The notes under the pieces were generated by a model. That model was given only the letters and a program-made list of their open reading frames with translations, was not told the origin of the DNA and did no database searches. This document shows positions 12,461-18,647 of a stretch of 64,000 nucleotides of DNA, in pieces; position 1 is the first letter of the stretch, and the number at the start of each line of letters is the position of its first letter. Source of the stretch: Macrostomum hystrix (lineage: Eukaryota; Animalia; Platyhelminthes); contig CATNEN010000003.1 in assembly GCA_950097015.1 (NCBI GenBank), positions 5,642,001-5,706,000 of the forward strand. Reading direction: 5' to 3'. The position numbers were made by a program, and so were the translations under genes.

Positions 12461-12570
12461 AGGATTGCAATGAATAATGGGAACATTACGCTGGTATATA
12501 AAATATAAAATTACAATGGTAATAATTAATAAATTATGCTATTTCTTTATTCCAGTAAATTGCAATCAGA

Positions 12571-15500
12571 ATGGAAATGGCAGGTGTTGAAGCGCAATCT
12601 ATTGACAATGATGGAAAATTTAATGAAGATACCATTGAAGATAACTCGGGACTAGTTAAAGCTGCTGACGCAGCTGATGATAGTGGAGATCAGCAGCAGC
12701 AGAAGCGGCACTTTCGACACCAATACCGCGGTGGTCCGCCATATTCTCAACATTACCAATTCCCTTATCGTCATCCTTATAATCATAAGTATCGAGTTCG
12801 GCCTAGCAATCCGAATGCCAAAGTTGACATTGGTGTCTCGCAGCAACAATTGTTAACCTGTGAACTATGCGACATTAAATGCACCGGCGAATCTATTTAT
12901 AAGCTGCATTTGGAAGGTGCCAGGTAAATTCTTTAGTCAGTTCAACAAATAAGCCAATTTAAAAGTAATATTGGAAGTGCCTGGGTATCACGTGATGGAT
13001 TTACCTAATTCTAATTAAGGCACATTAAGAAGATGAAGGAGCAGCGGTATCAACAACTATGCGAAGCCAAAGATCCTGAAGTCTATTGCGATGTTTGCAA
13101 ACTGACCTTGCACCCGGAACTGATGGTCACTCATCGGGCCGGATTGCGGCATAGAAAAGCTGCGGGTGATGCCGTTGGTCAGAAATCTCTGCCGCCTGGT
13201 ATTCACCGGGTCAATAATCAGCAACCTGCTCATGCTAAGCAGGCTGATGGTGAAACTAAGGTGAGCTTGTTATAGCTCTCAAAATATTCGCTCTTTTTAC
13301 TTCACTTCTCTCTGCCTTACCTACTTGTGTTTACCTGATTCTCTACCTGTACACTTTGCTTCTCTACCTGTACACTTTGCTTCTCTACCTGTACACTTGA
13401 TGATCTACCTGTACACTTGCTTGTGTACCTTTACAGCCTTCTACTTCTCTACCTGTAAAATATTACATTTTCTTACTTCTCTCTCTCCCTCTCTCTCTTT
13501 TAATTACCCAGATTATCTATTAGTTGTAAAATATTTTCTTTCAGACTCCAAGCATTGCCGAACAAATCGCAAAAACGGAAAATGGCGATTCCCTTTCTAA
13601 TGACTCAACTGGCGGCTCTGTTGTCAACGAAAAAGAAAAGCCAGCCAGCCAGCCGGCTGCCACTCTGTTTGAGCGACACTTGAGCAGCCTATCCAAGAAG
13701 GAGCTGATCAAACGCTACCGGATGGCTTGCTCCGTGTGCGCCGTAGAGTTTGACAGCTTCACCCTAGCCGAAACTCATTTTAACTCTAAAGCTCATCGTT
13801 TCGCCTATCAGAAGTCTCAACGTGCTCAAGGTGAGTCGGATGAGTCACTGAATCATTAATTATCGTGGGTAGTTAGTTTTCCAATCGTTGGTAATTTCTT
13901 TATTTCAGCTCACCTCAGCTCCTATCAACGTCAAGGAGTTGAGGCAAAAAATCAATAAAAAGGTAATTAGATGGGGAATTTGCTATTTAATGTGTCGTTT
14001 TTTATCTTGAGAAAATATTTTGAACCATGTTTTGTTTTTTTTAGTTCTTGCTCGTAGCGTTGTAAAAAAATGAGATCATGCATCTCATTATTGCTTGACT
14101 TGAATTAGAATTTGGAAAATCACTTGAATGTTGCCTTTTAAATTTAGATCGACGCACAATTGAGGAGATAAAGCATAATGTAGTTAGTTGCATAATGCAT
14201 TGCGGGCACACAGGCGCACGCTAAGTTTAGAATAAAAGCTAATAATTAAAACGCTTCAACGGTAAAAAAGAAAAAAAGGAAGTGTCCTTAAAGAATAGCC
14301 TAATAAAAGAATATCTGGTCTTGGCCAGTTTTTCGCAGGGCACTTTTAATATAGACGCAGAAAAGTATGTTTCGCGGCACATCACGTGATTTCTATTAAT
14401 ACAAACTGACGTCAGATAAACAAGGCAGCAGACCCATAACCAAGGGGTCTGTTGCTAAAAATAGTACTGACGTCACAGGACGGGCAGATATGTTACTAAA
14501 AATAACACATGAGTCACAAGCACAAATAAAAAGGCAGACAAATCGCTGATCCGAGGGCAGAGGCTTGACCTGAAAAGAGACAGTAAAACTAGGATCGGAC
14601 AATGGTGTCCCAAGTTTGTGTGGGCGTAGATTAAAAGTTGATTACATCCGGCTATAAAAAATGACAAGTTTTTGTTACTAAACTCACTTCACATTCGTTT
14701 GTCCTTACTAATTTTCCTATGATCATTTTTATCAGGGATTAGCTTAAGGACTAGATTAACAATATTCAGATAGGCAGATAGCGCAGATAGGCAGACTTCC
14801 GTGACAATATCATGTTAAAAAAAGCAACTATCGGACAGGACGCTGACATTGCTTCTTGTTAAAATCGCAGTAAAATCAATAAAAAACTGAACTAATAAAC
14901 TCAGTAACTAAAGAGTGTGATCATGTGTCCTTCCTAATTTCCTGACACTCAAACAAAAAGTGGCATTCAGCAATTCGCTTGAGGACAAAATTAATCCAGG
15001 CTTCCAACTATCCTAGAGTTAGGCATGATTCTAAAAGTAGCCTGACTCTTGGACGAGACGCTGACATTGCTACTTATGAGTAGGGTAGTGAAAATTTAGC
15101 TGATAAGTTTATTATCATGTAAGTTCAAAGTAATATATATGTTGACGCTGTAAAATCGTCTACCATAGAAGCGCTAATTAATTGTAAATACTAATTTCGC
15201 TTGCATTACTTGTGAGTAGTGTTGTCAATATTTTATCCAGTCCTTCCTAATTTCCTGATAGTTCAACAAAAATTGGCAGTCAGGAATTCGCTTGAGGACG
15301 AAATTAATCTAAGCTTCCAACTATCCTAGAGTTAGGCATGATTCTAAAAGTAGCCTGAATCTTGGACGAGACGCTGACATTGCTACTTATGAGTAGGGTA
15401 GTGAAAATTTAGCTGCTAAGCTTATTATTATGTAAGTTCAAAGTAATATAAATGTTGACACTTGAAAATCGTCTACCATAGAAGCGCTAATTAATTGTAA

Positions 15501-17507
15501 ATACTAATTTCGCTTGCATTACTTGTGAGTAGTGTTGTCAATATTTTATCCAGTCCTTCCTAATTTCCTGACACCCAAACAAAAAGTGGCATTCAGGAAT
15601 TCGCTTGAGGACAAAATTAATCCAAGCTTCCAACTATCCTAGAGTTAGGCATGATTCTAAAAGTAGCCTGAATCTTGGACGAGACGCTGACATTGCTACT
15701 TATTAGTAGTGTAGTTAAAATATGCATTATGTTTCATATAAATAAGGTTCAATGAAAAATAGTTACAATTAATTTTTATATCGTCTAAGGTTAAAACACT
15801 AACGAACATTATATTATTATCTCGCTTCCACAAAGTATGAGAGTGTTCTGAATATTTTTTCCTGTCCTTCCTAATTTCCTGACACTCAAACAAAAAGTGG
15901 CATTCAGGAATTCGCTTGAGGACAAAATTAATCCAGGCTTCCAACTATCCTAGAGTTAGGCATGATTCTAAAAGTAGCCTGACTCTTGGACGAGACGCTG
16001 ACATTGCTACTTATGAGTAGGGTACTAGTGAAAATTTAGCTGATAAGTTTATTATTATGTAAGTTCAAAGTAATATATATGTTGACGCTGTAAAATCGTC
16101 TACCATAGAAGCGCTAATTAATTGTAAATACTAATTTCGCTTGCATTACTTGTGAGTAGTGTTGTCAATATTTTATCCAGTCCTTCCTAATTTCCTGATA
16201 GTTCAACAAAAATTGGCAGTCAGGGATTCGCTTGAGGACAAAATGAAGCCAAGCTTCCAACTATCCTAGAGTTAGGCATGATTCTAAAAGTAGCCTGAAT
16301 CTTGGACGAGACGCTGACATTGCTACTTATGAGTAGGGTAGTGAAAATTTAGCTGCTAAGCTTATTATTATGTAAGTTCAAAGTAATATATATGTTGACG
16401 CTTTAATATCGTCTACCATAGAAGCGATAATTATTTGTAAATAATAATTTCGCTTGCATTACTTGTGAGTAGTGTTGCAACTCTTTTATCAAGTCCTTCC
16501 TAATTTCCTGACACCCAAACAAAAAGTGGCATTCAGGGATTCGCTTGAGGACGAAATTAATCCAAGCTTCCAACTATCCTAGAGTTAGGCATGATTCTAA
16601 AAGTAGCCTGACTCTTGGACGAGACGCTGACATTGCTACTTATGAGTAGGGTAGTGAAAATTTAGCTGCTAAGCTTATTATTATGTAAGTTCAAAGTAAT
16701 ATATATGTTGACGCTTTAATATCGTCTACCATAGAAGCGATAATTATTTGTAAATAATAATTTCGCTTGCATTACTTGTGAGTAGTGTTGCAACTCTTTT
16801 ATCAAGTCCTTCCTAATTTCCTGACACTCAAACAAAAAGTGGCATTCAGCAATTCGCTTGAGGACGAAATTAATCCAAGCTTCCAACTATCCTAGAGTTA
16901 GGCATGATTCTAAAAGTAGCCTGACTCTTGGACGAGACGCTGACATTGCTACTTATTAGTATTGTAGTGAAAATTTAGCTGCTAAATTTATTATTATGTA
17001 AGTTCAATGTAATATAAATGTTGACACTTGAAAATCTTATGATCTCGCTTCCACAACGTATGTTGTAGTTTTGAATATTTTTCCTGTCCTTCCTAATTTC
17101 CTGACACTTAAACAAAAAGTGGCATTCAGGAATTCGCTTGAGGACGAAATTACTCAAGCTTCCAACTATCCTAGACTTGAGCATAAAGCTTAAAGTAGCG
17201 TGAGTCTTGGACGAGACGCTGACATTGCTACTTATGAGTAGTGTAGTGAGAATGTTAGTTAATTAATCTTCACCTGTCATCCGCTGGTCTTCACCTCATT
17301 TTTTCAACAGTTCGCTCCAGCGGGCACGTTTGCGAAGTGTGCGACATTGCTGTTAACTCCGAAGCTCTCTACAATGATCACATCAAGGGCTTTAAGCACG
17401 CTCTGAGACTTCACGGCGGGTACATACCTGAAGGCCACGAGTTTTATGACAAATATTCAAAACAGCGCGAGGCCTTGATCAGTTATAAAAAAAATTATTT
17501 CGCTTAG
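12571..17507 (+). CDS. Multi C2H2 matrin/dsRNA-binding-type zinc-finger protein (ZNF385/ZMAT/ZFR-like); exons 12571-12923, 13020-13260, 13545-13830, 17311-17507
   Basis: Four widely spaced fingers: CELCDIKC..HLEGARH, CDVCKL..HRAGLRH, CSVCAV..HFNSKAH and CEVCDI..HIKGFKH. Exon 3 (phase 1) splices in frame to 17311. Confidence 0.8.
13909..13962 (+). other. Candidate 54-nt cassette exon with an in-frame TAA (poison or alternative last coding exon)
   Basis: tttatttcag|CT...AAAAG|gtaatt. Read in frame from exon 3 it gives AHLSSYQRQGVEAKNQ*. Confidence 0.45.
14701..14851 (+). ncRNA. Diverged box H/ACA snoRNA paralog
   Basis: GTCCT..AGGAC hairpin, AGATTA H box, and a 3' end GACGCTGACATTG shared with the array copies. 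Confidence 0.45.
14927..15069 (+). ncRNA. Box H/ACA snoRNA, copy 1
   Basis: Hairpin-hinge (AAATTA)-hairpin-ACAttg, about 143 nt. Confidence 0.8.
15240..15382 (+). ncRNA. Box H/ACA snoRNA, copy 2
   Basis: Same fold; the apical stem variant TAGTT/AATTG keeps pairing. Confidence 0.8.
15553..15695 (+). ncRNA. Box H/ACA snoRNA, copy 3
   Basis: Same fold and boxes as copy 1. Confidence 0.8.
15864..16006 (+). ncRNA. Box H/ACA snoRNA, copy 4
   Basis: Same fold and boxes; the upstream spacer has diverged while the RNA body is conserved. Confidence 0.8.
16180..16322 (+). ncRNA. Box H/ACA snoRNA, copy 5
   Basis: The H box variant AAATGA still fits ANANNA. Confidence 0.8.
16493..16635 (+). ncRNA. Box H/ACA snoRNA, copy 6
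   Basis: Same fold and boxes as copy 1. Confidence 0.8.
16806..16948 (+). ncRNA. Box H/ACA snoRNA, copy 7
   Basis: Same fold and boxes as copy 1. Confidence 0.8.
17086..17227 (+). ncRNA. Box H/ACA snoRNA, copy 8
   Basis: The 3' stem carries a compensatory G-C to C-G change (AGAGTT/GACTCT to AGACTT/GAGTCT). Confidence 0.8.
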
Positions 17508-17659: not shown

Positions 17660-18320
17660 CTAAACTGTATCTCTTAATCTCAGAAATCCCTGATTTGTGC
17701 CCCTGAATCACAAAAATCCCTAGATTGTGTCTCTGAATCACAGAAATCCCTAGATTGTGTCCCTGAATCACAAAAATCCCTAGATTGTAGCTCTGAATCA
17801 CAGAAATCCCTAGATTGTGTCCCTGAATCACAGAAATCCTTAGATTGTGTTTTTGAGACAAATAAATCCCTAAATGGTGTCCCTGAATCTCAGATATCCC
17901 TAGATTATGTCCCTGAATCTCAGAAATCCCTAGATTGCGTCCCTGAGACACAGAAATCCCTAGATTGTGTCCCTGAATCACAGAAATCCCTAGATTGTGT
18001 CCCTGAATCACAGAAATCCCTAGATTGTGTCCCTGAATCACAGAAATCCCTAGATTGTGTCCCTGAATCACAGAAATCCCTAGATTGTGTCCCTGAATCA
18101 CAGAAATCCCTAGATTGTGTCCCTGAATCTCAGAAATCCCTAGATTATGTCCCTGAATCTCAGAAATCCCTAGATTGCGTCCCTGAATCACAGAAATCCC
18201 TAGATTGTGTCCCTGAATCTCAGATATCCTAAAATTTTGTCCCTCAATCTTAGAAATCCCAATGTTGTGTCGCGGAATCTCAAAAGTCCCTACATTGTGT
18301 CCCTCAATCTTAGAAATCCT
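17660..18320. repeat. 30-bp minisatellite
   Basis: Unit CCCTGAATCACAGAAATCCCTAGATTGTGT. Confidence 0.95.
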
Positions 18321-18647
18321 TAAATTTGTCTCTTTAACTCTTTGATTCCCATTTAAGTTCAACCTCTATGATCTCTAAATTTATTAAATTTTTTCAAGCT
18401 CATAAATGTGGCTATTCTGATTAATCTTCAAGCATTAGCCATTATGCTTCATAAAAAATTATTTGTAGTAATATTGGATTTTTTTCTAAATAAATACTTG
18501 CAATCGAGTCGCTAAATAATTTGTTACATTTTGCAACCATCACGTTTAGATATTTTTCTGCGGTAAAATGCTTTTTTAAATATTTTAATCGGGTTCCTTA
18601 TTGTTGTGACACTTTTGATAAAAGTAACCCACAGTAATCATCTAAAG

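Follow-up and report, generated by a model that had tools for sequence, protein, structure and literature searches.

The window analysed here is a 64,000-nucleotide stretch of the genome of the flatworm Macrostomum hystrix (Platyhelminthes; assembly GCA_950097015.1, contig CATNEN010000003.1, positions 5,642,001 to 5,706,000 of the forward strand). At 14927-17227 of the window, inside one intron of a zinc-finger gene, eight units of 142-143 nt lie head to tail on the + strand with spacers of ~170 nt between them. These units are very probably eight functional or near-functional genes for a single small nucleolar RNA (snoRNA) of the box H/ACA class and of the SNORA52/Psi28S-1192 type, all in the sense direction of the host gene. 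When the region was analysed with Tandem Repeats Finder (TRF), a repeat with a period of 313 bp was reported at 14927-17036 (6.7 copies, 88 % matches), and the individual units were located with a start motif (GTCCTT.CTAATTT) and an end motif (GCTGACATTG). An earlier reading made from the letters alone (the sequence-only reading) had described a 313-bp repeat of eight such units at 14927-17227, and both its coordinates and its motifs were recovered.

The units are found at 14927-15069 (unit 1, with a C.C mismatch in the 5' upper stem), 15240-15382 (unit 2, with an altered apical stem and a G.A mismatch in the 3' upper stem), 15553-15695 (unit 3, followed by a diverged type-B spacer), 15864-16006 (unit 4, in which every stem is intact and which gave the top Rfam match, SNORA52 at 34.4 bits), 16180-16322 (unit 5, with the H box AAAUGA), 16493-16635 (unit 6), 16806-16948 (unit 7) and 17086-17227 (unit 8, the most diverged intact copy, with one true compensatory pair). 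Their predicted ends lie 3 nt past the ACA box, which gives a length of 143 nt in units 1 to 7 and 142 nt in unit 8. The spacers measure, in order, 170, 170, 168, 173, 170, 170 and 137 nt.

The same motif search located a decayed ninth copy (unit 0; 14701-14851, + strand) 75 nt upstream of the array. Unit 0 has retained its 5' hairpin and lost its 3' hairpin, and an H-like box and an ACA persist. Its altered guide letters make both pocket strands complementary to each other, so that the pocket is closed up. Scored with a covariance model that was made from units 1 to 8 (model R1), it reached 29.1 bits, versus 170-188 bits for those units themselves, and its fold (z = -0.55) carries no folding signal. 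The earlier estimate of an about nine-fold amplification holds in so far as eight copies are intact; the ninth is decayed and not working.

Four public runs (X1 to X4), none of them recorded as RNA, cover part of the stretch; three of these, X2 to X4 (one study, 99+ % identical), are clearly spliced RNA by their contigs. Splice joints were shifted by +2 (13828>17309 to 13830>17311), and the GT..AG contexts agree with this placement. Contigs of X2, X3 and X4 contain the joint 13830>17311, with 3,480 nt skipped, and the whole array is thus located within one intron in the sense direction. That position inside a single intron had been proposed from the letters and is upheld by the spliced contigs of the three runs. 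The intron (13831-17310, + strand, 3,480 nt, GT..AG) holds all nine units; the end of unit 8 is 83 nt from the intron end (17310) and 81 nt from the AG at 17309-17310.

When the eight units were folded together with RNAalifold, the consensus consisted of two hairpins and a single-stranded hinge with 35 pairs. The 5' hairpin is composed of a lower stem GUCCU/AGGAC, the pocket strands UCCUAAU and UUCGCUUG, and an upper stem UUCCUGA/UCAGGAA. The 3' hairpin has a short lower stem AGC/GCU, the pocket strands UUCCAACUAUCCU and UGGACGAGAC and a 10-bp upper stem, and is followed by ACA. In all eight units the H box AAAUUA (AAAUGA in unit 5) occupies columns 62-67, ACA occupies columns 138-140, and in the alignment the distance from the upper stem to the box is exactly 14 nt for both the H and the ACA box. 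When unit 4 was folded alone, its minimum free energy structure again had the double-hairpin shape, at -39.2 kcal/mol and with z = -3.0 relative to dinucleotide shuffles. Standard pairs occupy 96.6 % of the cells of the consensus structure, compared with 28-49 % when the partners were slid by 1-3 columns. Both the hairpin-hinge-hairpin-ACA fold of each unit and the 14-nt distance of the two pockets had been claimed beforehand, and both were borne out. The architecture, with its double hairpin, ANANNA hinge, ACA and guide pocket, supports the assignment of the units to the box H/ACA snoRNAs.

Comparison with Rfam pointed to a particular guide family. Every unit matched SNORA52 (RF00419), with a best score of 34.4 bits (E-value 2.2e-4 on 6 kb and 6.9e-6 on 191 nt), and every unit also matched the Drosophila family Psi28S-1192 (RF00542; best 29.5 bits, E-value 1e-3). 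The 5' lower stem and both 5' pocket strands (UCCUAAU and UUCGCUUG) equal the SNORA52 consensus letter for letter. The units share with SNORA52 (ACA52 of vertebrates) the class and layout, the 5' lower stem (GUCC/GGAC), both 5' pocket strands and approximately the length (143 nt here, 134 positions in the model). The apical parts and the entire 3' hairpin are unlike those of SNORA52. The gene organisation is also different, as the vertebrate SNORA52 gene is a single copy in an intron of a ribosomal-protein gene, whereas here eight tandem copies lie within an intron of a zinc-finger gene. The 5' pocket of Psi28S-1192 (CUAAUU / UCGCUU) and its hinge are related to those of the units, but the 3' hairpin of that family does not align with them.

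The M. hystrix ribosomal DNA (rDNA) was found by means of the predicted target word, which gave 18 matches in repeats of ~11.6 kb, while the reversed control gave none. In one rDNA repeat, annotation with Rfam placed 28S (L013:3247-7003), 18S and 5.8S on the minus strand, and these three sequences were scanned for an unpaired U-N flanked by pairing to both strands of a pocket. The 5' pocket pairs with the worm's own 28S around U1234 (AAGCGAA-UG-AUUAG) through 7+5 contiguous Watson-Crick base pairs, flush with the upper stem, and this pairing was equalled by 4 of 300 shuffled pockets in the three RNAs. The name of the Psi28S-1192 family puts its target near position 1192 of the fly 28S, which is comparable to U1234 here. 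ACA52 is tabulated as the guide for U1723 of the human large subunit RNA, in the numbering of that paper (PMC2730528). Judged from the identical guide, U1234 is probably homologous to the human ACA52 site. The array is likely to be the guide source for a conserved 28S pseudouridine predicted at U1234. The H/ACA snoRNA identity put forward in the sequence-only reading is upheld by the Rfam matches, the SNORA52-identical pocket, the 28S pairing, the location of the entire array in one intron and the invariant pockets described below.

One copy of the 28S target word was observed outside the rDNA contigs, on contig 1 (G000:C1:17468136-17468149), and may represent an isolated rDNA fragment.

The alignment of the units contains 25 variable columns among 143. 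None of these is found within the 38 pocket columns and none in ACA, while the two in the H box comprise an N position, at which unit 5 has G instead of U, and an alignment gap in unit 8, whose H box letters still read AAAUUA. Pockets and boxes together take up 47 columns, and the hypergeometric probability that they receive no more than 2 of the 25 variable columns is 0.002. Substitutions were thus tested for randomness relative to the functional parts, as had been suggested beforehand, and were found to avoid the pockets. The snoRNA bodies are 86-99 % identical among the eight units, and the spacers past units 3 and 7 (type B, or an A/B hybrid) share 56-63 % identity with the others; the bodies beside these diverged spacers keep 90-99 % identity. 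The statement that bodies are conserved while some spacers have been replaced is therefore confirmed. At the upstream edge of the array, homology starts at the first base of the RNA.

The whole genome was searched (220,453,370 bases in 42 contigs) with the DNA sequence, RF00419 and model R1, the best candidates of each first pass being scored. This locus was the sole match in the 220-Mb genome, although very diverged relatives may have been missed by such first-pass scoring. A transposon or dispersed repeat was considered as the nature of the unit and rejected, since the unit is found at this locus alone.

Several observations weigh against eight working genes. The gathering scores of the two families (71 bits for RF00419 and 44 bits for RF00542) were not reached by the best unit scores given above, and a search of the whole window against Rfam gave no family at its gathering score. 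The units are accordingly treated as a functional counterpart of SNORA52/Psi28S-1192, as the pocket and its predicted target suggest, and are not filed as Rfam members by score. The 3' pocket has no significant site in 28S, 18S or 5.8S, as its top site (28S U1188, 3+10 bp with mismatches) was equalled by 25 of 300 shuffles, and the lower stem of the 3' hairpin is just 3 bp long. Covariation is weak. At two pairs both partners have changed: units 2 and 5 carry G-U in place of C-G at 22:34, and unit 8 carries C-G in place of G-C at 92:120. A result as good was obtained in 31 of 500 shuffles, and other mismatches are uncompensated, namely C.C (units 1 and 7), G.A (units 2, 3 and 5) and A.G (unit 8). 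Thus the compensatory changes that had been claimed for copies 2, 5 and 8 do exist as pairs, and as support for the fold they are offset by these mismatches and by the shuffles. Weak covariation within the array is explained by the copies being young or homogenised. The five type-A spacers are 91-100 % identical to one another, which indicates that most of the array is young or homogenised, and since they are as alike as the bodies, conservation alone can not tell selection from recent duplication in the case of most copies. Finally, the RNA libraries are presumably of the poly(A) type, and in the contigs examined the depth over the units is ~3 in X1, X2 and X3, compared with 17-31 over the exons. 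Another piece of the intron (14254-14406) has a depth of 3.4. A depth over the units like that of other intron sequence points at most to precursor RNA and gives no evidence of a stable RNA of 143 nt.

These points could be accommodated by a satellite that started from a snoRNA gene or pseudogene and is dead, its young copies looking intact while none of them works. Type-A spacers conserved as much as the bodies, a unit 0 showing that copies decay here, a stem mismatch in five to six of the eight copies and a contig depth without any sign of stable RNA in the four runs are all in line with it. Nevertheless we consider a dead satellite very improbable. The array is the sole source of the guide found in the genome, while the target site has dedicated guides in human (ACA52; PMC2730528) and in fly (Psi28S-1192). 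In addition, the variable columns shun all four pocket strands (P = 0.002), and bodies have stayed 90-99 % identical beside spacers that have drifted to ~60 %. Functional or near-functional snoRNA genes remain the preferred reading of the eight units.

The spacers were also analysed. A conserved 3' trailer of ~26-30 nt is located directly past ACA+3 (15070-15095 and equivalents, + strand). This GUAG-rich trailer (CUACUUAUGAGUAGGGUAGUG...) follows each of the eight units, even where the rest of the spacer has diverged. A similar motif occurs ~25-45 nt upstream of the type-A units, and 2 of 300 shuffles were as good in local alignment. When the trailer was folded, no significant hairpin was obtained (z about -0.5 to +0.5). 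The trailer is a candidate for a processing signal; alternatively, it may be a recombination junction. The possibility that the spacer is a decayed second snoRNA copy was rejected, as just the ~22-nt repeat of the trailer motif was detectable.

A pattern scan of the + strand further revealed micro-exon-like cassettes (AG, 19 nt, GTAAGT) at 15100-15118, 15413-15431, 16040-16058, 16353-16371, 16666-16684 and 16979-16997; a 19-nt cassette is missing after units 3 and 8. With six spacers carrying a 19-nt block between AG and a perfect GTAAGT, the blocks could be micro-exons of a non-productive isoform, placing most units in introns of their own, an arrangement like that of non-coding snoRNA host genes. 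Cuts by an endonuclease between the units would then be unnecessary, and the host gene already has an optional exon with a stop codon. However, no joint using the cassettes was seen in the contigs of the four runs, in which the dominant mRNA skips the array in one step, and the candidate acceptors are without the T-rich tract that is present at all four real acceptors of the host gene. Moreover, cassette splicing can not serve every unit, since units 3 and 8 are not followed by a cassette. Although contigs drop rare isoforms, the lack of joints weakens this explanation, and on balance we judge it unlikely.

Each unit might instead be an independent gene with a promoter in its own spacer, being intronic by position alone. 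Nematodes are known to have snoRNAs that lie within introns yet are transcribed independently, and the ~170-nt spacers here have been retained with each unit and contain a TATA-like run. On the other hand, every unit has the same orientation as the host. The stretch upstream of unit 1 shows no relation to the spacers, and spacers of type B depart strongly from those of type A, so that no common upstream element exists beyond ~45 nt. The RNA contigs give no sign of separate starts either. We therefore find promoters within the spacers extremely unlikely.

If the units are intron-encoded genes expressed with their host, established H/ACA biology suggests how they would be made. Transcription of the host pre-mRNA would yield the snoRNA precursor, and dyskerin/Cbf5, Nop10, Nhp2 and Naf1/Gar1 would assemble on each double hairpin of the nascent transcript. 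Exonucleases alone could free at most the outermost units, and internal cuts are thus needed; the excised intron would be cut between units and then trimmed to the protein-protected bodies. In the mature particle the 5' pocket would hold U1234 of the 28S RNA at its top, 14 nt away from the H box, where the base would be converted into pseudouridine. A more far-reaching proposal is that the array is a dosage device, that the trailer, together with the upstream motif, is the cleavage signal freeing eight particles, and that tandem amplification inside introns is the general strategy by which flatworms set the levels of H/ACA guides. We regard this proposal as doubtful. If true, it would amount to a processing mode undefined so far in any animal.

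Unequal crossing-over of a unit consisting of the snoRNA plus its spacer is the most likely origin of the array, and the same process most likely keeps the copies uniform. The decayed unit 0 and the two type-B spacers, which are older, would most likely be traces of earlier rounds of duplication.

RNA contigs of X2 and X3 (14927-15102 / 16132-16179; 16493-16686) were observed to mix variant letters of different units, for example a body like that of unit 3 joined to a type-A spacer. This mixing suggests either copy variants that are missing from the assembly or chimeras made by the assembler.

When the array was compared with known gene organisations, the nearest counterparts were intronic clusters and non-coding host genes. 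Animals mostly carry one snoRNA per intron, as stated for vertebrates and for a fly cluster (PMC2780460, PMC1821038). Several H/ACA snoRNAs per intron ('intronic gene cluster') have been reported in rice and Drosophila, according to a passage of PMC2780460 that cites Huang et al. 2004 (J Mol Biol 341:669, a title that PMC5932544 lists as well). The contrast with animals carrying one snoRNA per intron, drawn in the sequence-only reading, is hence right about the usual habit and overstated in view of these clusters. Like the Drosophila intronic clusters, the array places several H/ACA genes in one host intron; it differs from them in having eight near-identical copies of one guide, a regular 313-bp repeat and a conserved 3' trailer, as far as the fly clusters are described in the citing papers. 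Non-coding host genes with a single snoRNA in each intron (UHG/GAS5, Drosophila dUhg, and the cluster in the mfl 3'UTR; PMC1821038) resemble the array in that snoRNA isoforms are repeated by local duplication, and their short exons resemble the exon-like blocks between the units here. In contrast to those genes, the array is removed as one intron from a coding mRNA, and use of the short blocks was not seen in the contigs.

Known before are the RNA class, the guide family and the gene organisation; new are the regular array of eight copies, its host gene and its occurrence in this phylum. The array extends the organisation of several H/ACA genes per intron from flies and rice to Platyhelminthes, and it provides a flatworm genome with a well-supported snoRNA annotation; the published description of this genome contains no mention of snoRNAs (PMC10468722). 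It also illustrates that repeat masking can hide real RNA genes. The finding fits the view that H/ACA particle assembly is independent of position relative to the splice sites, and with eight equal units in one intron the locus offers a clean test case for the release of inner units. Knowledge of snoRNA function is unchanged by the array.

The host gene itself comprises exon 1 (12556-12923, with the ATG at 12571 and a spliced leader at its start), exon 2 (13020-13260), exon 3 (13545-13830), an optional 54-nt exon (13909-13962) and a last coding exon (17311-17507, stop at 17505-17507), all on the + strand. When the exons were searched against Pfam one by one, they were found to encode four zinc fingers of the zf-met / JAZ type (dsRNA-binding): a first zf-met finger in exon 1 (E-value 6.7e-6), a U1-like zinc finger with a weak match in exon 2, a JAZ-type finger in exon 3 and a fourth zf-met/JAZ finger in the last exon. 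The optional exon contains an in-frame TAA, its translation ending in ...EAKNQ*, and the joint 13962>17311 of the form that includes it was present in contigs of X1 and X4, the runs in which joints of this exon were found. Inclusion of this exon would either remove the last of the four fingers or target the mRNA for decay.

In contigs of X2, X3 and X4, exon 1 is preceded by an identical 22-nt loose end (...TTATTGCAT followed by a shared G; window 12533-12556). Its presence in three runs indicates a trans-spliced leader of the flatworm type on the host mRNA. The leader's own ATG is directly followed by TAA in the host gene, and the real ATG is the one at 12571. A comparison of exon 1 with protein representatives identified two orthologues of the host protein in Macrostomum lignano (UniRef A0A1I8F2X5 and A0A1I8ILK6), while a search for relatives with the peptide of the last exon gave no match.

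In the annotated rDNA repeat, a full-length U1 small nuclear RNA (snRNA) gene (151.7 bits; L013:1068-1230, minus strand, equal to G000:C15:10067-10229) lies inside the ~11.6-kb unit, ~2 kb downstream of the 28S gene and on the same strand. If the U1 gene is present in every rDNA repeat, U1 would be co-amplified with the rDNA. Around the host gene, two minisatellites are located directly downstream, at 17676-18330 (30-bp unit, 21.9 copies) and at 18745-~19350 (16-bp unit, at least 16 copies), and a third with a 21-bp unit lies in intron 2 of the host gene at 13339-13457.

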